Shown here one piece after another: positions 23 to 54,812 of a stretch of DNA of 64,000 nucleotides. The notes below the pieces were generated by a model. The model did no database searches, was not told the DNA's origin, and saw only the letters and a program-made list of their open reading frames with translations. Source of the stretch: Podarcis pityusensis. Taxonomy: Eukaryota. Each line of letters opens with the position of its first letter. Position 1 is the stretch's first letter. The stretch is taken from NCBI GenBank assembly GCA_964106645.2, contig OZ067039.1; one strand, 5' to 3'. A program made the position numbers and the translations under genes.

Positions 23-3000
23 CTGAAAGGAAGGGAGGGAGAAGACACAAGCAGAGCCTTAGATACTGCCACTGCAGCAGTTTTAAAACATAGTCTTGAT
101 TCAGAGCCATGAAGCTACTATATCAGTTCGCCCAACCTAGATAATAATGTGATCATGAAGAGTTCTCCAGGACTGCCCCCTCTCACAGAAGTAGAGAAGA
201 AATACCAGCATTGTTATTATTTTTATATCATCTAAATTGCATTTTATAGCATGTGACTGTATGCAGCTGAACAACTGGCTACAGTTGAGGCTACTTTAAT
301 AAAAGAAAAGCAGGCTTTTGGCAGATATTATCAGTGGGGCAGCTTTAAATCTGGTTCAATGGCAATCTTGCACCTTCTCTACTCTTTCTTAATGTTCTCA
401 CAAGCACATCTTTTAAACCGAATGCTTCATCTTGGCATTGGTCCACTTTTCTAAGGACAGAAATACAATAAACTTCCTTGAAGTTATCCTGCTTCTCGAT
501 GGCAATTTGGCTAGAATGCTACTAATCCAGCCAGGAGGTCAGATAAGCAGCGTTAAAGCAATCTCGATTAGTTTAGTGTTCCTGTGAGCCATTTTTAGCA
601 TTATTCATAAAAGGGGCATGTAAATAAACTTGATTATGATTCTGTTTTAACAGGCTGGACCATCTGAGGCCTACTAGAAATGTATTCACATTTCAAATTT
701 GCAAGTCATGCCATCAGATATTATCTCTGTTCTACAGCTTGGAAGGGGTAGTACCTCTGGTGGGGGACATATTGTTCTCCTTCTGGGGTAGTTTGCACTC
801 CAGGGAAGTCACTTTGGTGCTGCTATCCCTTGCGGGATATCTTCGGGAGAAGAAAAGGCTAAGAAGTACACACTACACAAATCCAGAGTGGAGTCCCAAA
901 GATGGTTGGATGGTGCCTTGTATGCCCTCTTTCCAGCAACTCCTGCGGCCAAGCTGGTGCCAAACGTATTGCTCTGCTTTTCTTTGGACCATGTCAGTGA
1001 GGCCCGGAGGGAGTTCTTGTCATCTGGGCAGCCCAGGACCTCCATACACACTGCTCAGACTTGCACCCTGGGGAGGTCACTGGTGTTGCTAGCGCAGCGG
1101 TTTGGCTTCATCCCTGAAGGCACACTTGGTTGTCTCTTGAGACAGACGGATACCAGCAGCAACAACAACTAGGAAACGCAGGGCGTGAGCTATTAACTGA
1201 CTTGGTGAATATAATCAGTGCCATAATCCAGAACATTTTGCCTTTAAGCCAATCACAACAAGGTCATATTATTCTTCCTAGGTAAACAACAAAGCACACA
1301 TGTTTAATTTGCAACACTGCAAGGTAGATTTACCTGCTTATTCAGACATATGTAAATGACTGGATTGTATACGGTGCCTGTTTTAGCCATATACATAGGG
1401 ATGCTCTGGATTTGGGGACCCATGATGACTTCTGGATTCACCACTCTGGTCAGGGCAAAGGCAGCATAAGGCACCCAGCTGAGAAGAAAGGCCAGGATCA
1501 TAATGACAACCGTCTTGGTCACCTGAGTCTCAGCCCGCTGAGTCGAATTGCTCTGGGCTATGCCACTTTTTGCCACCTAAGAAGAGAGAGGATGAAATGC
1601 AATGTATTACTATAAGACTGGGGGCTGGTAGCAGAAGGAACTGCTGAAATGGTCAGATGAAGATTTAGGCTACGGGGCGATTTCTTCTTTTCATCTTCTG
1701 CGTCTTAAGACTTTGTGGGCTCTTCCAGTGGCTCACAGAAATGAATACGCTGCTTTCTCTGCTTTTTGCAGCAGTTTAAATGCTTCAACTAAAACAACGG
1801 CAGCCATCCATGGATGCAAACGAGTCAAAGAGGAGGGACTCCAGAGACAACAATAAAGAATGGAAAGCGGTGGCAGCTGCTAAACAATGCCTGCGCTAAG
1901 TATTCCCAGCATGCCCTGAAATAATGTGCCTATAAATAGCTGCAAGTCATATTAGTGCAAAGGACATGCCTCCTTCAAATGCCTTAAGGTCAGACAGTTG
2001 TTACTGGAGCCTAAGTATGTATTGTCTCCCCAAGACTGAACGATCGGTTGTTGCTCTTTCTTTCTTTTTCTTTTGCCATTTCACACCCACCCACACATAC
2101 CTTTTCAAGTTAAACATAAGTTGAAACATCATGGAATTTTGCCTAGATTTCTTCAGTGTTGGTCTGATCCTAAAATCTGTGGCTCAGTGGCAGAGTTCCT
2201 GCCTTGCATGCAGAAGGCCCCTGGTTCAATCCCCAGCAGTTCCAGGTAGGGCTAAGAAAGACCCCACTTGAAATCAGTGAGTTGCTGCCATCAGTGTAGA
2301 CAATACTGAGCTAGATGATACCAATGACCTGACTCAGAGTAAAGCAGCTTCCTCTGTTCCTAATCTGATCCAGAGCTCGGATACATAAAGGGACTGCTGT
2401 GCAAGGGGATTCTGTCTCCATTCGTGTCAGTGGAAGACTCAGCTCCAGGCTCACAATTTGTGCCGGATTTACGTATAAGCTAAACAAGCAATAGCTTAGG
2501 GCTCCACTCTCTTGGGGGCCCCCAAAAAAATCAAAAGGAAAAAAGGTGTTTGCATTATTAAGTTTGTTATGAATAATAATCATTTTAAGTTAGAGCTTAA
2601 TAATTATTTCACTATTGATATGGGTAAAGGTAAAGGGACCCCTGACCATTAGGTCCAGTCGTGGCCGACTCTGGGGTTGCGGCGCTCATCTCGCTTTATT
2701 GGCCGAGGGAGCCGGCGTACAGCTTCCGGGTCATGTGGCCAGCATGACTAAGCCGCTTCTGGCGAACCAAAGCAGTGCACAGAAACACCGTTTACCTTCC
2801 CGCCAGAGCGGTACCTATTTATCTACTTGCACTTTGATGTGCTTTCAAACTGCTAGGTTGGCAGGAGCAGGGACCGAGCAACAGGAGCTCACCCCATCAC
2901 GGATATTCGAACCGCCAACCTTCTGATCGGCAAGCCCTAGGCTCCGTGGTTTAGACCACAGCGCCACCCATGTCCCTATTAATATACTATATAATATACT

Positions 3001-6000
3001 ATTAATATACTTCTTCTTAATTGTATTTCAGTATTAATATATTTCTTAATTGTATTTCAGTTCAGCAATTACTTTGATAAAATACATATTTTGTTAGGTG
3101 CAAATGGCTTTAGATACCTATTAGGTCCATAAATTACCATATAGCATATATTCAACACAAAAAACAGCGACAATTTGTTGTTGGCAAAGGACAGCTGGAC
3201 ATATAAAGGGCCCCATTACCTTCAGTAGCTTAGAGCCTCATCAAACCTAAATCCGGCCCTGCTCACAAACCTTTTGCACTCATTGAAATAGCTCTCCATT
3301 TAAATGCATGGAAAGGCTTTGCAAGGTTTTCTCTGTGTGTGTGTACTTTGAAAGGAAGAAGGCTGCCTGGAAAGGAACGCAGCCCTCAGACTGAAAAAAT
3401 GTTCCTCACCCTCCATTTAAAAACTCAGGGCTGGATTAAATTGAGCTGTCCTGCAACGGGAAGCCAGAGCAAGGTCTCCCAATACCATAATGGGACTTCC
3501 CCCACCTCCTCCCCCAAATCCACTCTGGACAGGGAGAACAAGCATAAAAGAAGGGAAGGCTAGATTGTTCCATCTGGGAAGCGGAAATGCTTATACTAAT
3601 GGAACAATCAGAAGACAACCTGTCTATGGAGCCTTCATCCCGATTTGTTAGCACAAAGTTTTTGGGGTGTTAGACAGCACCAGCTACTTACTGAGCCTTC
3701 ATCCCCATTTACTTGCAGGAGGTTAGATGGTATTACGTCAAACAAAAGTCATCCCACTCTTTGCAGTGCATTTTCCCATTGCTTGCCTTATTGCAACCAG
3801 TTTTGGGAGGGAGTGGGTTTGTTGGGCCAGAGCTCCAAATCAACTTTAATTGCGCAACTCGAATTTGCCAGTATGTGACCGAACCTCACTTGAAAGTAGC
3901 AAGGGCCTGCAAGCGTCCTGAGTATGGTACAAAGCAGAAATTCTCTTGTTTTCTTCTAGGCCTCAGGCTACCCAACTGTAGAAATCAGTTGCAAGAACCC
4001 TTTTGGAACATGCATTCCAGACTCTTAGCAGAACTAGTGAATGATTTCCTCTGCTATGTGGAAGCAGGGTGGGTGACTCACCTGTTTGAGGACGACTCAC
4101 CTGTTTGAGGACGTAAATGAGCTTGCCGTAGGACCAGAGGATAAGGGCCAAAGGAAGCAGGAAGCACCACACGAAGAGAGACAAGTGGTAACTGCGGCTG
4201 TTCCAGTCTTCTCTGTGCCAGGCCAGAGCGCAGTTTGAGGCAATGCCTTCCACATCGTAGCTACTCCAACCAAAAAGCGGTGGCAGAGTCCACATGATAC
4301 ACCAGAGCCAGGTAAACAGGAGCGCCAGGAGGGCATGTTTCTTCCCAAACTGGATGCCTTTGAATGGCCTGCAAACCACCAGGTACCTCTCCACAGCACA
4401 CACCACAACAGACCAAAGGGCCACCAGCCCTACAGCGGGAAGAGGAAGGATTAATGCATGCTTGTTCTCAGGGGGGAAAGCTTCTCCAGAACCCTGGCTA
4501 GGATGCTGCCATAATGGTGGCAAAAGAGGAAAGTGGCTGCAGGATGCCTTGCCAACCCTTTTCCCAGCACATTCCCTCACTGGCCGTGTAAGCATCCACT
4601 CAGGTCACATCCACACAGGCTGCTGCAGAGGGAGGGGGCAGCCAGGTACACTTGCCCCCAGTCTCAGAGAGCTAAGCAGGCTAGGGGGGCCTTGCCAGGG
4701 GCCTTCCAGACTCTCAGCCCATGCCTTAGACAAGCTCTGCACAGGCCTGCATCCATGCCATACGTTTAAAGCACATGGCTTGCCCCCAAAGAATCCTGGG
4801 AACAGTAGTTTACCCCTCAGAGAGCTACAGTTTCCAGAACCCTTGACAAACTACAGTTCTCATATTGGGAAGCCACATGCTTTCAGTGGACTTTGTGTGT
4901 GTGGTGTGGGTGTGACCCTGTATAGGAAATTAATGTTTATTTAGGTCAGGTTCTTGCCTCACTGGACTCAGGAAAATTAAGTGTAAGAGGTAATGACTTT
5001 TTCCAAGGCCCTCCTGACTGCTCCACGGGGACCCTTTACTATTATTCTTCTTCTTGTCATTCGTATAGAACTTTCAGGGTTCAAATCACTTCACAAGTAC
5101 TATTTCACTAATATTTCACTTCCTTATAAGGCAGGCTGAGGGGGAAATACCAAGAAAGGGCCTTCCACCACCCTCAGAAGTTGGGGGGGTGTCCTGGGGG
5201 AGGGCATTCTTTGTGGCAACCCCTAAATTGTGGGATTCACTTCCCACAGAGGTGTATCTGGTACCTATACAATACAGCTTTCAGCAAATGCTGAAGATGC
5301 ATTTCTTTACTCCGGCCTTTGACACCTGAGATACATGTTTTCAGGATCCACCCTGTTCCTGCGATTGCACTTTGTTTTAACTGTTTTTAATACCCATCCT
5401 CTGCTGGTTAAGGGCAGGTAATAAAAAACAATAATAGAACTACTACTGATGGTGGTGGTGATGCAGACAAAGGGCCTAGACTGAGGCCGAGAAACAAGTT
5501 GCTTGCTCAAAACCACCTAATAAGCTCACCATGGAGATGAAATGTGGACCCAGCAGTCCGCATGTACCCTATTTTACAGTGGACAGTCCTTTATGCAAAG
5601 GCATCCTCTGTTCAAAGGGCTGTCCAGGACAAGTCCAGTTTAAAGAGACCTTGAAGTTGACCATCAACAGTTAGTCCCCGGACAGCCAAATGAGCAATCA
5701 CACAGGTCACCTGATCAAAGTCGACCCCAATACAGTAAGATGTAATCCTATAAAGTATTGTAATTATTTCTAAATTAGCATATATGCAACTTTTATGCAA
5801 ATCTGTGCTCTCTGTTCTCTTTTCTTGTTGAAACATTTGCTGTTTCTTGGTGATGCTTAAGAAGCAACCCTAACCATACTAAGTATCATGCTTCATAAAC
5901 CTGAATGAGAAAACCACATTAGGTGGTCTTTTCTGGAGTGTCTGTAATGGTTGTAAAGCTAGCAACAGGGATGTGCCTTGGTCTTTCAAATGTCAGCAGC

Positions 6001-7403
6001 GCCCTGTGTAAGGCCAAAATTCACACCTCTCACACCTCTCGCCTTCTATTCTGCATGTGCGCTACGTCATAGTGTGACACCCTGCAGCACAAACACACAC
6101 AGCTCAGCATCCAGTGCAGGGAAACCTGTCATGCTGCCCTAAATCTGCCTCTGCTAGCAGCTTGTCCAGAATGAGAAGAAGGTGTCAAATTCTAGGCCTC
6201 CCCACAAGAGAAACCACAGGAGTTTGAAGAATATGTGGGTGGGTGGGTGGTTTGCTTGCTTGGTTGCTGTTGAATGATCGCTGGGCCTGGGGTTTCCCAC
6301 CCAGTTGGTGGGACTCCCTCCTGTTTTCCATCTCACACCACAGCAAGAGGACATTTTACTTCTGAGCTAGCATTCATCCACATACTAGCAGGCATGTCCA
6401 GGAGGTGGCTGCAGAAAGGAAGGAGATGGGTGCTGTGAGCTTCCCACCTTTTCATCTATGTGATAACTAACTTAAAACTCTCCAGGCAACCATCCAAATT
6501 TTCACTCCAGTGGTAGATGAAGCTTATATATTGAATTCCTTGAAGATTCACAAATATGATTCAGATGTGGGTTTCCAGTTCAGATGCCTTCCCTTAATAT
6601 ATATGTAGTTCAGGTACTGAGTTACATTTTCACTAGACTGTAGTGTCTAGAGCTTAACAAAATGTTTACTTACATACTGAGAATTCCTCAAATTCCACTT
6701 ATATACTGAAAATTCCTCAAATTGGAAATTGGGAAGGTCAACATTAATATATTTTTTTAATCATCTGAAACGTCAAATTGGAACAAGCCCCAAACTGATT
6801 GTCACCATCAATTTATTCAAGGAAAAAACCCCAAGCAATTATTATCTCCATTCTGACTTAATATTTGTTTCTTCGCTATAGTTGTGCTCACATTATCCTA
6901 TGTCTGACAGTGATTCCCCACAGATTTCTATCTGCGTATGCAACATGGGTTGTATAAATGCATGTATAGACTACTATGTATGCAGCAGAACTTCCATTAG
7001 CAATGACACACATAAATCTAGATAGGTGGGTAGGTGGGAATCACTTACCAAACAGAGCAACGGAAAAGCCCTGGAAGATGCAGAAATACTTGTTTTCAAA
7101 GTAATACCCATGCAGATTAGCATCCGTCGTGGGGCAGAGTCCAATCACTAGACTGCCCATGTCTGCAACCGACAAGTTCACCACAGCGTAATTAATAGGA
7201 ACCCTGAGAAATTTGTGCTTGATGGTTAGTAGAATGATGGTTCCGTTGAACCAAATACCCAGAAGCATGCCAAGGATCATAAGCACCCCAAGACCAAACT
7301 TGTATTTCTTTTCCCTGGCCTGATCCAAGCAGGTGATGGCGTTACACGTCACATTGGGTCCAAGGGATGTTGAAGCATTGGAGGAAAACAGAGAATGATT
7401 CAT
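1..7403 (-). CDS. Non-visual ciliary opsin with Gln113 (parapinopsin/parietopsin-like; probable lepidopsin / QB-opsin); 4 exons, 3' end outside window. join complement(<1..22,1334..1576,4101..4429,7049..7403)
   Basis: Spliced ORF of 316 visible codons with 7-TM opsin hallmarks: LRVPINY...NLSVAD, C110-IF-Q113-GF, ERY, PPLFGWSSYDVE181G..C187, WVPY, MAK296TGTVYNPVIY, NKQ|YR. All introns are GT-AG and phase-compatible (1,0,0). Confidence 0.95.
1334..1576 (-). CDS. Opsin exon 3 (ICL3, TM6, TM7 with retinal-binding Lys)
   Basis: Acceptor ttcttag|GTG, VAKSGIAQ...PMYMAKTGTVYNPVIYICLNKQ, donor CAG|gtaaat; 243 nt; Lys codon at 1382-1384. Confidence 0.95.
2178..2362 (+). mobile_element. tRNA-derived SINE (Squam3-like)
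   Basis: A box (tggctcagtgg) and B box (ggttcaatcc) head, body ending cagcttcctctgttccta; related degraded copies near 14620-14835 and 39345-39520. Confidence 0.7.
2458..3261. mobile_element. Non-autonomous hAT-type element with nested Sauria SINE
   Basis: Inverted ends gccggattta / taaatccggccctg; 8-bp flanks ctcacaat (2450-2457) and ctcacaaa (3262-3269). Confidence 0.65.
2623..2976 (-). mobile_element. Sauria SINE
   Basis: Reverse complement of the GGGAC..GGTGGCGCTGTGG head and ACCTTTACC tail; near-identical to the copy at 8795-9151. Confidence 0.9.
4075..4112. repeat. Perfect 19-bp tandem duplication covering the opsin exon-2 donor
   Basis: gactcacctgtttgaggac twice (4075-4093, 4094-4112). 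Confidence 0.97.
4101..4429 (-). CDS. Opsin exon 2 (TM3 to TM5)
   Basis: Acceptor ctgtag|GG, LVALWSVVVCAVERY...YGKLIYVLKQ, donor CAG|gtgagt; 329 nt. Confidence 0.95.
7049..7403 (-). CDS. Opsin exon 1 (N-terminus, TM1 to TM3)
   Basis: MNHSLFSSNAS...YFCIFQGFSVALFG; donor G|gtaagt at 7048. Start ATG chosen by opsin length and N-glycosylation sequons (NHS, NAS, NVT); upstream in-frame ATGs exist. Confidence 0.92.
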
Positions 7404-43300: not shown

Positions 43301-46300
43301 TGACACTTCTAGACTGCCATCCGAAGCACATTTACTAGAGAAGCAGTCTTCAGCGGGACTTGCTTCTGAGTAAACTTGCTTAGGATTATTCTGTTAAAAC
43401 AAGAGTAAGCTACCGCATCCCACTGTAATAATTTGTTCTCACTTCTGAGCAAACACAGAATTGGGCTGTTAGCCTTATTTCATACCATAACCAAGGATCA
43501 TTTCACATGAATGTATGGCTACGATTACTATAAAAACATTGACAGCTAAAAATATTTCCATTTGTCTTCTGATTTTAACAATTATTGTTCTCTTGAGTGC
43601 TTGAGGTTATATATAGAAGAGAGCTGCAAAGAAATATATATAATACCCAGTCCAGTTAGCCTTGTTCAGTACATTAATTACTTCCCTGAGCGCACTCTCC
43701 ACTCACAGTCCTCCTGGGAGTCCAGCTGGCCAGTCATGGGACAGTTGCGGGGGGGGGGGGGGCAGTGATGGAAAACTCCAAACATGGGCTCACATATGCA
43801 ATAGGGAAAAGGATGAATGCAATGGACAAATGGATGCCTCCCTAATTTTCATCTGAATGACACAAAATTATTTAAATGACTTCAAATCTGAAACAATCTG
43901 AACTGCAGTCCAAGCCTTTCACACATTTCAGCAGCCCAGTTATTTCGTTGGAAACTCAGCTCCATTGAGATCATTTGCTTCCGTCAAGCATAAATGCAGC
44001 AGCCTGGGTGGGAAGTAATAAGATTCCAAGCTTCTGATGAACCTGTGTATTCAGTAATTATTGTTAAATTATCAGTATGTCAAATAGGTATGTTAGTTGA
44101 TGGATGTGCATTTCTCTTAAGTAATCTCAAGCACAGGATGACATTGTATAAATGTATGCTTGAAATACAATGCATTTTCTTTCTCAGAGCATGTGAAAGT
44201 TAATACTATTTAGTATATTTCAAATCACATTTGCTTGTTTTTACATCAGTGGTGTTCAAGAACTGTTTTTTTTATCTGTTCTAGAAATAACTTTTAGAAA
44301 AACAGTCCTAGCCAGCAGTTTCTCATCAAGTAGTTCGACTCCTACAAGCCATACAGTTACTCAAAGATGCTCTGAAACACCCGGCCTGGGAAGCAGAAAT
44401 CAGGTAATGGCTCATTTTCTGAGATAGTTTTTGTCATAAACCAGCAAAGTCTGTAGCCCACTCAAACCTGAATGCCATGTCTGAGAAAAGTGGAGTAAGA
44501 TTTCAGCAAGATGGCTGACTGGAAACATATTTCAAATAGCTGTCCATATGTTAGATAATCTTTNNNNNNNNNNNNNNNNNNNNNNNNNNNNNNNNNNNNN
44601 NNNNNNNNNNNNNNNNNNNNNNNNNNNNNNNNNNNNNNNNNNNNNNNNNNNNNNNNNNNNNNNNNNNNNNNNNNNNNNNNNNNNNNNNNNNNNNNNNGAA
44701 ACTATACCATGGCTACTTTAAAAAAGCAAACATTTTTTTCTTTTCCTGAGGTTTGCTTGTAAACTTCTGATACAAGGAAATCTGATGTATTCACTGAATG
44801 TCTTCTACCTATAGCAAGGGTGGGGAACTATATCTGCTTGGTGGGCCGGAACCTATCTTCTCTCAACTTCCCTCATAGGCACAGTTAAGTAGGTAGCCAA
44901 TGCACCCAGTTGTCAGTATCCTGGCATCACAATGACTGCAGGTTCCTATGTGGATGATCAGCTAATCATCAGGACTTGCAAAGAGCTACCTGTTGATTTG
45001 CCATGTTGCACTAAAGAACAACAAAGCCTATACATGCCATTCTGCTTTAAAGGGGGAAAGCACCATTCAGAGCAATCACTAGCTACTCCAGATAGCCAAG
45101 TGATGCTTATTAAAGTCATTTTAAAGTTAAACAGGTTATCTAGGGTTGCCATATTTCAAGAAGTGAAAATCCGGACACAAACAAATTGACATTAAAAAAA
45201 AATAATGCCAAAGAACTTGACACATTCCCTTTTCGGTGGCGGGGGGACAACACAAAAAACCATTGAAATCCCAGTAATGTCTGGGATAATCAGAACGTAT
45301 GGCAACCATATTATAGCCCACAGTTCAGCTAGTTATTGAGCCATATTAACCTTTTGAACTATGTTAAGGTTGTTATGTGACTAGGCCCACCTTTTACTAG
45401 ATTATCGTGTCTCCTTTTGTATGTTTGTTTCTTCACTTTAATATTTTTTCCTGCTCTTAAAGCAGTCAATGATTCAGGCTTACAATCTTAAAAACACAAA
45501 AAGAAAAGTGATTGGAAGGGAGGAGCAAAGAGACCCCACTTCTTAGTTACAAAGTTCTTGTAAGTGTTCTTTCCAGCAAGCACTGGCAAAGCAAGATCCC
45601 TGCAGCTGCATGCAATGCATGGGGACCGACTGATCTTCCTCTTGTCCATTACTCTCTACTTGGGAGTCAGTAGGAGCAGCCTCCCAGCGGCCCTTAGTCC
45701 CCTGGCCGATGGCAAACGCAAGAATGTACTGCCCTTCAGTTGTGCAGTACCAGGGGCAAACTTGACAGATGCATCAGAGTGTGACTTATTTATTCTGATT
45801 CCCTTCTCTTTCAAGGTACCTGCTTCTCAGTTGGACTCTTCCAACAAATATGAAAATGCCCATCACATGTGGTGAGAGTGATGTTTCATTTTGATTTCCA
45901 CTTCTACCTCTTGAACATTTGCATGCATTCAAAACTTGTAGCTGCTAGAGATCACTGTAAAGAGAGGAGAAATAAAGTTGTGAAGACTTAAGGGGGTTCA
46001 TCTGCCTGGGAGCTCCCTGTACTTCCTGTTTAAAGCAGAAGTGTGAAACAGGAAGTACAGGAAGCAGCTCCACAAAATGCAGATGGGGCAAGTTGAGGTC
46101 AGGATGGACTCTGTACACACTCGAAATGGTTTGTAAGGACCAGCTGAATGAATGCATACCTGCATAAGTTCAGCAACCGTCTACTTTTATCTCAAATGCC
46201 ATTGCCTCATTACATATAATAATAATTATCAATAATAATACATGTATTTTAAATATTTTAGTAATGAAGAGACACCAGAGTGAGACTTGGAAATAGGATG

Positions 46301-52300: not shown

Positions 52301-54812
52301 GAGAGATCTGGCAGCTTGTACTTTCCCAAGTTCTTGCATGCAGTTGTACCCTTCCTTTTCCTGAGAGTAGCCTGAGTGCAGTGGCCTTGGAGAAGAAAGA
52401 GCTGTTGGATGCTCCTCAGTAAGTATGGGGTGACTTCAGATTGACACAAATCGTTTAGCCAGGGGATTGAACTCTTGGCATGCCTACTTTGACAAAGCTT
52501 TCCTTCTTTTCGCAATACAGTTTTAATCTGTCCCTAATTTGACTTGGAAATCCAGACAATTGCAGCATGAAAATCTGAATTTTGAAAATCCAGTGTGAAT
52601 AGTATTCAAACTATTTAGCTCTTCACTGTAAAATCCGGTTCAGAACTCAACCTCCTGCCACATCTTAAGCCATTTGTCCTGTTGGTTACATCATCCCTGT
52701 CTTATAGTAAATCAGAATTCAGCTGGGAATCCTTTGGGCAATGCAGTCAGTGACGCTGAAATCAGTATGGAAGTTCAGCCTAAACAGATGTATTCATTAA
52801 GCACTGATTGTCAATCTTTTCCTTTACCTGAATGAAAATAGAGTTAAAAAGAACAGATACGGGTGTGTTAATGTTAAACTACAAAAGGGCATTCCACCCA
52901 TCAGTACATCATGTACATAAAATTACCTCTAATGTGAGTCACTGAGAGAATGGGGGGGGGGGGGGGTTTAGCAAAATATAAGCTCATGGTGAAGAACATT
53001 TCTAGCAATCCTGTTCTAAGGATTTAGGAAAATAAATTGTGATTGGGTAGAGTCTGGCGGGTTAGAAAAGGGAAGATGCAAAAGCAGATGGAAATGAATA
53101 GCCTTAATTGTCTGAGTTTTCTTTTTCTTTTTGCTGATCTAAACACTGTACCCATTTAGATTTTCCTCTTTCTCCGTCCCTGCCATGCAAAAAGCCCAAC
53201 TTATTACATATACAAAATTAACAGGATGGAAGGATTCCAGTCTTCTGACGCAGTACTTTTCTATGTGCAAGAAGCTTTCCCCCACCTGCTGGCTGAAGTA
53301 GTACAATCCCGTGACTCCTGCACCATGTGATTTCTTTGCATGTGTAGAGAGGGTATGAATAGTGTTTCTGGCAATGCTAAACAAGTATAGAACTTAACTG
53401 AAAAGCACAAAAAATACTGGGGTAGAGGGGAGCATCTGGGATTATGCTGACAACTGTATTTTTAGCACTCTTCCGCACCCCCTCCTGAGTAAATTCCAAG
53501 AATGAAAGAGGAAGTTGAAAAGTTAGGCCAACAAAAATGTTTACCATCAGCAGTTAACTTCTTTTAAAAAGTGTTATATATAATTTATTGATACTTAGCA
53601 TGAGCTTAGTTTGTCTGACTAGGCCTGGGAAAATTGTAAATCAGATCCCCACTCAGCCATGAAGCTCACACTGGGTGGCCTTCGACCAGTTGCTACCTTT
53701 CAGTCTGACCTCACAGACTTGCTGTGAGGGTACAGTGAGCAAGGGAATAACCATGTATACTACCCTAAGCATCTTGGAGAAAGGGGCAGGGACTAAACTG
53801 CAATCTTAAAAGGCATGTAATTTAGTATGTTCAAAGTGCTTCCCATACATTATTTCAATGTTCCTTAAAATAGTACTGGCCTGCTTGATGTGATTACCAT
53901 CATATTACATGTGGGGGACTGAGGCTGAGAGGGAATGACTTGCCTAAGACATCTAATGAATGCATGGCAGAGGTGAGATTTGAATCAGTGACTTCTAGTT
54001 CACTGGTGCCTATTTTAATATTTACCAGAGTATCCACATCACTCCAAGTTTCAGTTTGAAAGCCTGTTGTTAATATTACAGATAAAAACATTCTGTGTGA
54101 CTTTTAGCCTAACTTTTTAGTTGCTTCCTTGGTAGAATTATTTTAATAAGTGCAGACTATAAATTGTGTATTTCTGCTTACAGGGAAAATGGAGAATTAT
54201 GAACTGATTCATTCTAGTAGAGTGAAGTTCATATATCCCAATGAAGAAGAAATTGGGGACCTTGCCTTTCTAGTAGCAGAGAAGATGAACTGTGTGATTA
54301 ACTTCCAGTCTCTGAATATACTTCTCTATGTGCTAGCGTTTCAAGTGAATGCTACAGAAGGGACTGCTCAATCCAACAGCTCACTTCAACCTAAAACGCT
54401 GATCTTAACCAGCTCGGATATGTTTCTTTTCAATGAGGATTACATCAGTTATCCACTTCCTGAATTTGCTAAAGAACCGCCAAAGAAAGACAAGTATCAA
54501 CTTGCAGATGGAAGAAGGATCCGGGATTTAGACAGAGTGCTCATGGGATATCAGACGTATCCGCAGGCGCTCACGTTTGTTTTTGATGACATTCAGAATC
54601 AAGATCTCATGCAGAACCTGACCCTTGATCACTTTGACAATGTTCTCAGTTTTCCTAAAGGGCAGGTCACCCAGGAAGGCAGCAGCAGTCGAGAGGTCCT
54701 GTGGTGTGTCTTTATCCCAAGTCCAGAAAGCCGCGAGAAACTAATATCTCTCCTTGCTAGGCAGTGGGAGATCTTATGTGGTCGAGAGCTACCTTTGGAG
54801 CTCACTGGGTAG
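22262..54812 (+). CDS. NISCH: Nischarin (PX domain, leucine-rich repeats, C-terminal region); 21 exons, 4257 nt, 1418 aa
   Basis: All 21 exons are AG/GT bounded and phase-consistent; recognisable motifs [38 protein letters not shown], LRRs, [49 protein letters not shown]. Confidence 0.97.
24306..24552. mobile_element. Tc1/mariner MITE with a different internal sequence
   Basis: TA-cagtggtacctc...aggtatgactg-TA; internal tgcgcatgcg palindromes. Confidence 0.8.
28600..29280 (+). mobile_element. Degraded L1/Tx1-type LINE ORF2 3' fragment (approximate bounds)
   Basis: 28906-29106 reads WEDDL...WDQIW...[27 protein letters not shown], resembling the Cys-rich C-terminal domain of L1-clade ORF2. 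Confidence 0.65.
29768..29851 (+). CDS. NISCH: NISCH exon 2 (PX)
   Basis: [28 protein letters not shown]. Confidence 0.96.
30290..30340. repeat. (GAAGA/GAAAA)n microsatellite
   Basis: Read directly from sequence. Confidence 0.9.
31402..31584 (+). CDS. NISCH: NISCH exon 3 (PX)
   Basis: [22 protein letters not shown]...FLHFHLY. Confidence 0.96.
32727..32775 (+). CDS. NISCH: NISCH exon 4
   Basis: [16 protein letters not shown](G). Confidence 0.94.
33744..33907 (+). CDS. NISCH: NISCH exon 5
   Basis: [10 protein letters not shown]...[16 protein letters not shown]. Confidence 0.96.
34804..35162 (+). mobile_element. Sauria SINE (CpG-rich, young, different subfamily)
   Basis: gggacgcgggtggcgctgtggg...acctttacctttacc; perfect target-site duplication tgccatgactt. 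Confidence 0.92.
35688..35783 (+). CDS. NISCH: NISCH exon 6
   Basis: [32 protein letters not shown]. Confidence 0.95.
36645..36740 (+). CDS. NISCH: NISCH exon 7
   Basis: [32 protein letters not shown]. Confidence 0.92.
37129..37281 (+). CDS. NISCH: NISCH exon 8
   Basis: [17 protein letters not shown]...[15 protein letters not shown]. Confidence 0.96.
37702..37770 (+). CDS. NISCH: NISCH exon 9 (LRR)
   Basis: [23 protein letters not shown]. Confidence 0.95.
38080..38265 (+). CDS. NISCH: NISCH exon 10 (LRR)
   Basis: [15 protein letters not shown]...[13 protein letters not shown]. Confidence 0.96.
39080..39208 (+). CDS. NISCH: NISCH exon 11
   Basis: [43 protein letters not shown]. Confidence 0.96.
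39720..39833 (+). CDS. NISCH: NISCH exon 12
   Basis: [26 protein letters not shown]...DKK. Confidence 0.96.
40150..40400 (+). mobile_element. Degraded L2 LINE fragment
   Basis: LDY..G....LVQNA.A.L...H.T.VL.ELH.. pattern typical of the L2 ORF2 C-terminus. Confidence 0.6.
41611..41719 (+). CDS. NISCH: NISCH exon 13
   Basis: [36 protein letters not shown]; strong acceptor. Confidence 0.9.
42080..42476 (+). mobile_element. Sauria SINE
   Basis: Same head and body, (cctta)n tail. Confidence 0.88.
44285..44403 (+). CDS. NISCH: NISCH exon 14
   Basis: (E)[30 protein letters not shown]...RNQ; phase 1 to 0 fits neighbours. Confidence 0.8.
44564..44697. other. Assembly gap (134 N) in NISCH intron 14
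   Basis: Run of N. Confidence 1.
45141..45310. mobile_element. hAT-like MITE
   Basis: tagggttgccata...tatggcaaccata inverted ends. Confidence 0.6.
45816..45871 (+). CDS. NISCH: NISCH exon 15
   Basis: [18 protein letters not shown](C); needed to bridge phase 0 to 2; poorly conserved. Confidence 0.7.
46348..47661 (+). CDS. NISCH: NISCH exon 16 (large, 1314 nt)
   Basis: 438-aa ORF with [16 protein letters not shown] and [25 protein letters not shown]; donor AG|gtgagg. Confidence 0.96.
48679..48853 (+). CDS. NISCH: NISCH exon 17
   Basis: [28 protein letters not shown]...FHSSIAE. Confidence 0.93.
49768..49921 (+). CDS. NISCH: NISCH exon 18
   Basis: [17 protein letters not shown]...[13 protein letters not shown]. 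Confidence 0.96.
50510..50731. mobile_element. Tc1/mariner (Tigger-like) MITE
   Basis: Same family as 15611-15852. Confidence 0.9.
50954..51082 (+). CDS. NISCH: NISCH exon 19
   Basis: (D)[10 protein letters not shown]...[21 protein letters not shown](G). Confidence 0.94.
51633..51794 (+). CDS. NISCH: NISCH exon 20
   Basis: [18 protein letters not shown]...[20 protein letters not shown]. Confidence 0.96.
54184..54812 (+). CDS. NISCH: NISCH exon 21 (last coding)
   Basis: [15 protein letters not shown]...[13 protein letters not shown]. Confidence 0.97.

Follow-up and report, generated by a model that had tools for sequence, protein, structure and literature searches.

The contig OZ067039.1 of the lizard Podarcis pityusensis (assembly GCA_964106645.2) carries a gene that combines Gln at position 113, Glu at position 181 and Asn at position 186 of an opsin (bovine rhodopsin numbering), and raises the question of which opsin family it belongs to and how its product would respond to light. 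We analysed a stretch of 64,000 nucleotides of this contig, hereafter called the window. Very probably, the three exons found in it represent exons 1-3 of a lacertid orthologue of the opsin named lepidopsin (OPNLEP) or Q113-bistable (QB) opsin, a pigment that would be ultraviolet (UV)-sensitive and bistable if it behaves like its orthologue.

The gene itself is not new: the OPNLEP/QB family has been known since 2025, and the window supplies the copy of one more species. It was named QB opsin by Gyoja et al. 2025 (PMC11893379) and lepidopsin, OPNLEP, by Romero & de Souza 2025 (PMC12043008). Both papers describe a gene with Gln113, a conserved Glu181 and four coding exons, positioned as in parapinopsin, which is found only in tuatara and most lizards with a parietal eye, remnants being present in other vertebrates. 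The family is prone to loss and has disappeared from many vertebrate lineages (PMC11893379). Podarcis muralis was analysed in detail in both studies, its QB opsin being XP_028573285.

Exon structure and identification of the gene

Three open segments with opsin motifs were identified by three-frame translation of the minus strand, and their splice sites were read from the sequence (Table 1). The three exons contain neither stop nor frameshift, are bounded by canonical GT/AG splice sites and carry all the hallmark residues. For this part of the gene, introns 1 and 2 and the donor of intron 3 occupy the published positions and extracellular loop 2 is not interrupted by an intron. The best matches of each exon among solved structures were bovine rhodopsin and cone opsins, and from its sequence the gene product is assigned to the retinal-binding G-protein-coupled receptors of the vertebrate non-visual opsin group. 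Positions 3266-4812 and 6129-7150 were reproduced with zero differences by an independent sequencing run bearing the same organism label (X4, records 21 and 24).

The exons were searched individually. In a word search scored on exon 2 alone, the matches were a Podarcis muralis protein (99% identity), Varanus (79%), two unnamed fragments (about 79%) and Anolis (74%), the next ones being VA, OPN3-like and pinopsin-like proteins at only 38%. A second search starting from the Podarcis protein retrieved the full-length 'parapinopsin-like [Zootoca vivipara]' protein P0014 (381 amino acids), which was used as the orthologue for the whole-protein search, and the Sceloporus QB opsin P0016. The closest sequences found were those of Podarcis muralis and Zootoca vivipara. 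When P0014 was compared with the window using tblastn, its residues 1-119 aligned with exon 1 at 95.8% identity and its residues 229-309 with exon 3 at 97.5%; exon 2 differs from P0014 by a single residue (99% over 109 columns). The aligned parts of P0014 agree with the Zootoca-OPNLEP entry in Table S5 of PMC12043008. Because a named orthologue matches the three exons at 96%, 99% and 97.5% identity, the combination of residues at 113, 181 and 186 is not a chance pattern.

A quick tree was calculated from the 109 columns of exon 2. The window exon falls within a 13-row clade of lizard OPNLEP (Shimodaira-Hasegawa-like approximate likelihood ratio test, SH-aLRT, support of 99), beside Podarcis and Zootoca. 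This clade is sister to the parapinopsins, as published, and exon 2 lies outside both the parapinopsin and the parapinopsin-like sequences. Compared with known OPNLEP/QB opsins the window gene shows no difference in kind: Gln113, Glu181, Asn186, the Cys110/Cys187 pair, Lys296, the positions of introns 1 and 2, the upstream TNNC1 gene and the clade are all common to both. This copy carries four substitutions of its own in exon 1, and the splice donor of exon 2 is duplicated; both features are discussed below.

Numbering and key residues

Positions follow bovine rhodopsin, each exon being aligned by HMMER to solved structures. Residues 38-116 of exon 1 align with residues 40-118 of structure 1f88 over equal lengths, so that the native Gln111 corresponds to position 113. 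Exon 2 aligns with residues 123-232 of bovine rhodopsin (E=2e-27) and the alignment is gap-free from 123 through Cys187; in loop 2, W-S-S-Y-D-V-E-G-I-A-S-N-C of exon 2 is paired with W-S-R-Y-I-P-E-G-M-Q-C-S-C of bovine rhodopsin. Residues 8-81 of exon 3 correspond to bovine positions 239-312 (offset 231). A preliminary description of the locus, made from the sequence alone, had assigned Gln113, Glu181 and Asn186 to the codons listed in Table 1, and the HMMER alignments of the exons to bovine rhodopsin place all three at the same codons. The window gene thereby displays the hallmarks of OPNLEP/QB: Gln113 together with Glu181, Lys296, the Cys110-Cys187 pair, E-R-Y and N-P-x-x-Y.

Table 1. Positions in the window of the opsin exons, their key codons and motifs, the duplicated splice donor and the neighbouring genes (TM, transmembrane segment)
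Feature	Position	Strand	Remarks
OPNLEP/QB exon 1	7049..7403	-	ATG at 7403; N-terminus, TM1 to start of TM3; phase-1 donor G/GTAAGT; Pfam 7tm_1
OPNLEP/QB exon 2	4101..4429	-	TM3, TM4, extracellular loop 2, TM5; acceptor AG 4431-4430; donor CAG/GTGAGT after 4101; Pfam 7tm_1
OPNLEP/QB exon 3	1334..1576	-	TM6-TM7; acceptor AG before 1576; donor CAG/GTAAAT after 1334; Pfam 7tm_1
Asp96 codon	7122..7124	-	Acidic in OPNLEP (Asp; Glu in tuatara), absent from parietopsin
Cys110 codon	7080..7082	-	Disulfide partner of Cys187; HMMER alignment
Gln113 codon (CAG)	7071..7073	-	Motif C-I-F-Q-G-F; counterion position of vertebrate visual opsins
E-R-Y motif	4391-4383	-	Exon 2, TM3
Glu181 codon	4248..4250	-	Ancestral counterion position; residue-by-residue alignment
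Asn186 codon	4233..4235	-	Ser or Thr in other vertebrate opsins sampled
Cys187 codon	4230..4232	-	Alignment to bovine rhodopsin
Lys296 codon	1382..1384	-	Retinal attachment site; exon 3 alignment
N-P-V-I-Y motif	1366-1352	-	Exon 3
Perfect 19-bp tandem duplication	4075..4113		Copies the exon 2 splice donor; period 19, 2.1 copies, 100% match
TNNC1, three exons	14321-14172, 13629-13513, 12418-12278	-	tblastn, 94-100% identical to troponin C as contained in P0017/P0018
NISCH, last part	54150..54812	+	C-terminal PH domain; PF25625, E=7.9e-61

Photochemistry and proposed mechanism

Spectra are available for the green anole orthologue. Expressed with 11-cis retinal, the anole QB opsin has a dark peak at about 370 nm and is converted by UV light into a form absorbing at about 470 nm; yellow light reverts this form and the cycle can be repeated, which defines a bistable pigment (PMC11893379). 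Glu181, conserved in the family, has been named the ancestral or likely counterion (PMC11893379, PMC12043008).

By extension from the anole, the neutral Gln113 would leave the Schiff base on Lys296 unprotonated in the dark state, giving UV absorption near 370 nm. UV light would isomerise the retinal and yield a stable photoproduct with a protonated Schiff base, absorbing near 470 nm, and visible light would return this photoproduct to the dark state, hence the bistability. The protonated photoproduct is probably stabilised by Glu181 of extracellular loop 2, since no other conserved acidic residue occupies a known counterion position. The most likely behaviour of the window protein thus combines a dark state in which the Schiff base is unprotonated and a stable, protonated, visible-absorbing photoproduct, with Glu181 probably acting as the photoproduct counterion. 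Expression of the gene may take place in the parietal eye or the pineal.

The preliminary description had proposed an ancestral-type, probably bistable pigment, a view that the reversible 370/470 nm spectra of the anole orthologue support and that was already published in 2025, P. muralis included. It had further left a choice between reliance on Glu181 and an unprotonated, UV-absorbing Schiff base; judging from the anole orthologue, both halves of this alternative appear to be true, each in a different photostate.

Asn186 as a family signature

The new point of this analysis concerns position 186. In Table S5 of PMC12043008, Gln113 is present in all 35 OPNLEP sequences, from tuatara to skinks, and Asn186 (motif I-A-S-N-C) in 34 of them. 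The remaining sequence has Ser186 (motif I-A-S-S-C) and matches the gene model P0017 of Phrynocephalus forsythii. The lepidopsin of this species associates Ser186 with Pro189, and that of its congener P. putjatai Asn186 with Leu189.

We gathered 217 opsins by word searches and by a full HMMER scan of representatives with P0014. In the alignments, each OPNLEP row extending over position 113 has Gln there, and within this set Asn186 adjoining Cys187 is confined to the OPNLEP clade. All the parapinopsins, pinopsin and rhodopsins sampled have Ser186, the VA opsins have Thr186 except for one with Ser, and the OPN3/TMT-like opsins all have Thr186. As for parietopsins, 120 sequences were collected (among them Sceloporus, Pogona, frogs, salamanders and zebrafish, the representative being identified by name), and the 113 that aligned cleanly all exhibit Gln113, Glu181, Ser186 and Cys187. 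OPNLEP and parietopsin consistently differ at 186 and also at 94 (Thr versus Val), 96 (Asp versus a non-acidic residue), 184-185 (Ala-Ser in the window gene versus Gln-Thr) and 188. From these alignments, Asn186 is a nearly invariant signature of the lepidopsins and sets them apart from parietopsin. The position is not discussed in PMC11893379 or PMC12043008, the supplements of which contain neither 'S186', 'N186' nor 'position 186'. Residue 186 of parietopsin is addressed neither in the preprint on piranha parietopsin nor in the G188C paper in eLife. The description of Asn186 as unusual, first made for this locus, is valid among vertebrate opsins, the rest of those sampled carrying Ser or Thr at this site, but not for opsins as a whole, since squid rhodopsin has a native Asn186 (PMC6513861).

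Gln at position 113 was also observed in two models resembling visual opsins, P0082 (Rhineura floridana 'blue-sensitive opsin-like'), which in addition has Lys at 181, and P0116 (Gymnorhina tibicen 'OPSUV, partial'). These may be odd or decaying visual opsins, or gene-model errors.

Spider Rh1 (Ser186) and squid rhodopsin resemble the window gene in having no acidic residue at 113 and in having Glu181, which is their counterion. They differ from it in being Gq-coupled, in their Tyr113 and in their visible-absorbing dark states, and are only distant relatives. [quoted passage not shown] Such behaviour is in keeping with a pigment that lacks Schiff-base protonation in the dark and acquires it upon illumination, and it is plausible that Asn186 alters the Schiff-base pKa in OPNLEP. 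Going further, Asn186 might be a functional signature of lepidopsin/QB: on the common Gln113/Glu181 background, losing the Ser186 that links Glu181 with the Schiff base, a residue kept by the green-sensitive parietopsin, would lower the dark-state pKa and contribute to the unprotonated, UV-absorbing dark state while the Glu181-stabilised photoproduct remains intact. We hold this extension as tentative and rather doubtful. A drop of 1.8 pKa units alone would be insufficient to deprotonate the base at neutral pH, and the UV-sensitive parapinopsins retain Ser186. Squid rhodopsin, with its native Asn186, has a pKa near 10 and absorbs visible light (PMC6513861). If the proposal is true, N186S in lepidopsin and S186N in parietopsin would shift the dark-state protonation, and the Ser186 variant of P. 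forsythii would be a spectrally shifted lepidopsin.

Duplicated splice donor, exon 4 and transcription

The splice donor of exon 2 is copied by a perfect tandem duplication (Table 1). The upstream donor is in frame, whereas the use of the downstream copy, 19 bases further on, would shift the frame and end translation ahead of Lys296, 14 codons into exon 3. The duplication is present without differences in the independent run X4 (record 21) and in a related species (X17, record 4); because it is reproduced in both, it is genuine and did not arise recently.

A tblastn search of the 1333 bases below exon 3 with the full-length proteins P0014 and P0016 revealed no convincing exon 4, which should comprise about 72 codons and in other lacertids begins Y-R-D/E-K. 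Look-alikes noticed by eye at 1263-812 were weak and unsupported by tblastn, and were rejected. The C-terminal end of P0001, the P. muralis model in UniProt, was likewise discarded as exon 4: it corresponds to positions 1214-1092 of the window and is a read-through into the intron. According to Table S1, the OPNLEP locus spans about 6.4 kb in P. muralis and about 8.0 kb in Lacerta agilis, compared with 7.4 kb of sequence available at the locus here, where the gene has been lengthened by high-copy repeats inserted in intron 2. Exon 4 most likely lies just beyond the window edge, as the Lacerta agilis locus is longer than the sequence available.

Two intron stretches, 2596-3359 (intron 2) and 4697-4887 (intron 1), showed very high read depth in all four runs, RNA-seq included. 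Many joints and loose ends were seen in the same stretches, some with tRNA-like letters. These stretches are inserted high-copy interspersed repeats, probably of the short interspersed nuclear element (SINE) type.

Several observations weigh against a functional, bistable lepidopsin. Intactness extends over exons 1-3, exon 4 having escaped the search above, and the duplicated donor could divert some transcripts into the frameshifted product. There is no RNA support: the one true RNA-seq run, from a related species (X24, about 12% of it read), gave zero depth on the exons, a result of little weight because its tissue is unspecified. Two further runs guessed to be RNA, X17 and X19, also cover the introns and thus behave as DNA. 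In addition, four substitutions in exon 1 (7403-7049) are absent from the other lacertids of Table S5, the anole orthologue that supplied the spectra reaches no more than 74% identity in exon 2, and Glu181 is a putative counterion in every OPNLEP. The private residues of exon 1 are the Lys in R-E-K-K, the Met in I-L-G-M, the Leu in G-S-L-V and Tyr108 before Cys110; exons 2 and 3 have no private residues relative to the other lacertid lepidopsins of Table S5.

Gene neighbourhood

In the published order, OPNLEP is flanked by TNNC1 and RPL29, and NISCH and STAB1 follow on the far side of TNNC1 (PMC11893379 Fig. 4, PMC12043008). The window has TNNC1 on the strand of the opsin and upstream of it, and NISCH farther along, in agreement with the published order on the TNNC1 side. 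An assembly gap of 134 N is present at 44564-44697, between TNNC1 and NISCH.

In two deposited gene models, P0017 of Phrynocephalus forsythii and P0018 of Varanus komodoensis, lepidopsin exons and troponin C (TNNC1) are joined into a single protein. These fusions are an annotation artefact, the two genes being neighbours on one strand and separated by about 5 kb. In UniProt, the Podarcis, Varanus and Anolis models (P0001, P0003-P0005, P0007) are likewise mis-spliced or truncated.

Alternative explanations

Two other families could be considered for the gene. A parietopsin (OPNPT) orthologue, that is, a green-sensitive pigment with Glu181 as its dark-state counterion, would share with it Gln113, the conserved Glu181, Trp191 and Lys296, and the two families have in common four exons and the link to pineal and parietal organs. 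However, the representative parietopsin P0076 is only 33% identical to the orthologue P0014, and loop 2 reads E-G-V-Q-T-S-C in each of the 113 cleanly aligned parietopsins, those of Sceloporus and Pogona included, instead of the E-G-I-A-S-N-C found here. Moreover, exon 2 branches inside the OPNLEP clade, and the parietopsin of Podarcis is on chromosome 10, whereas OPNLEP is on chromosome 2 beside TNNC1, the gene also present here. Parietopsin also absorbs visible light, near 522 nm, with a protonated Schiff base, in contrast to the UV-absorbing QB opsin. Sequence comparison, tree and synteny refute this identity, to which we attach practically no probability. The NCBI automatic name 'parapinopsin-like' would point instead to a parapinopsin or to a recent parapinopsin duplicate, a very improbable assignment. 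Parapinopsins (the lamprey/tetrapod form and teleost PP.a) are indeed the sister family in the tree and have in common with lepidopsin four exons, UV sensitivity at about 370 nm, bistability and a visible photoproduct, but they possess Glu or Asp at 113 (Glu113 with Ser186 in all those sampled) where the window gene has Gln113 and Asn186, and they are about 38-44% identical. The OPNLEP clade is separate with a support of 99, and in Podarcis a distinct parapinopsin is located on the chromosome that carries OPNLEP, at a distance of about 6.1 Mb. A parapinopsin identity is therefore refuted at the subfamily level, the sister-family relationship remaining.

The assignment to lepidopsin being retained, the copy could still be decaying or non-functional, for instance through the loss of exon 4 or mis-splicing at the duplicated donor. 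Exon 4 was not found although the P. muralis locus extends over only about 6.4 kb, a second identical donor lies 19 bases downstream and shifts the frame, no reads fell on the exons in the single RNA-seq run, and the family is loss-prone. Against these points, exons 1-3 are open with canonical splice sites and every hallmark residue, the Lacerta agilis locus is longer than the sequence available here and intron 2 has been lengthened by repeats, the donor duplication also occurs in a related species and is thus old and tolerated, and the RNA run came from an unspecified tissue and was read only in small part. On balance we regard decay as unlikely. For a functional lepidopsin, the counterion of the photoproduct might be the acidic residue at position 96, near the site 94 known from a jellyfish opsin, rather than Glu181. 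Every OPNLEP sequence seen has Asp or Glu at 96, which the parietopsins and parapinopsins lack. In the helix geometry of bovine rhodopsin, however, residue 96 is located two residues past Thr94, which faces the Schiff base, and its side chain is expected to be directed away from the pocket. A cnidarian opsin does have its counterion at position 94 (PMC6513861), but Glu181 is the counterion in every tested opsin devoid of Glu113 (PMC11893379, PMC12043008, PMC6513861), which makes residue 96 an improbable candidate.

Implications

OPNLEP/QB has been put forward as a candidate UV/visible switchable optogenetic tool (PMC13094114). The occurrence of Asn186 in a UV pigment and of Ser186 in a green one, on a shared Gln113/Glu181 background, offers a clean and cheap pair of point mutants for the study of the dark-state Schiff-base pKa in opsins relying on Glu181 only, and the Ser186 lepidopsin of P. 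forsythii constitutes a natural test of the role of residue 186. The gene described here belongs, with the probability given above, to OPNLEP and is one of the rare surviving members of this old family of vertebrate opsins, which is associated with the parietal ('third') eye.

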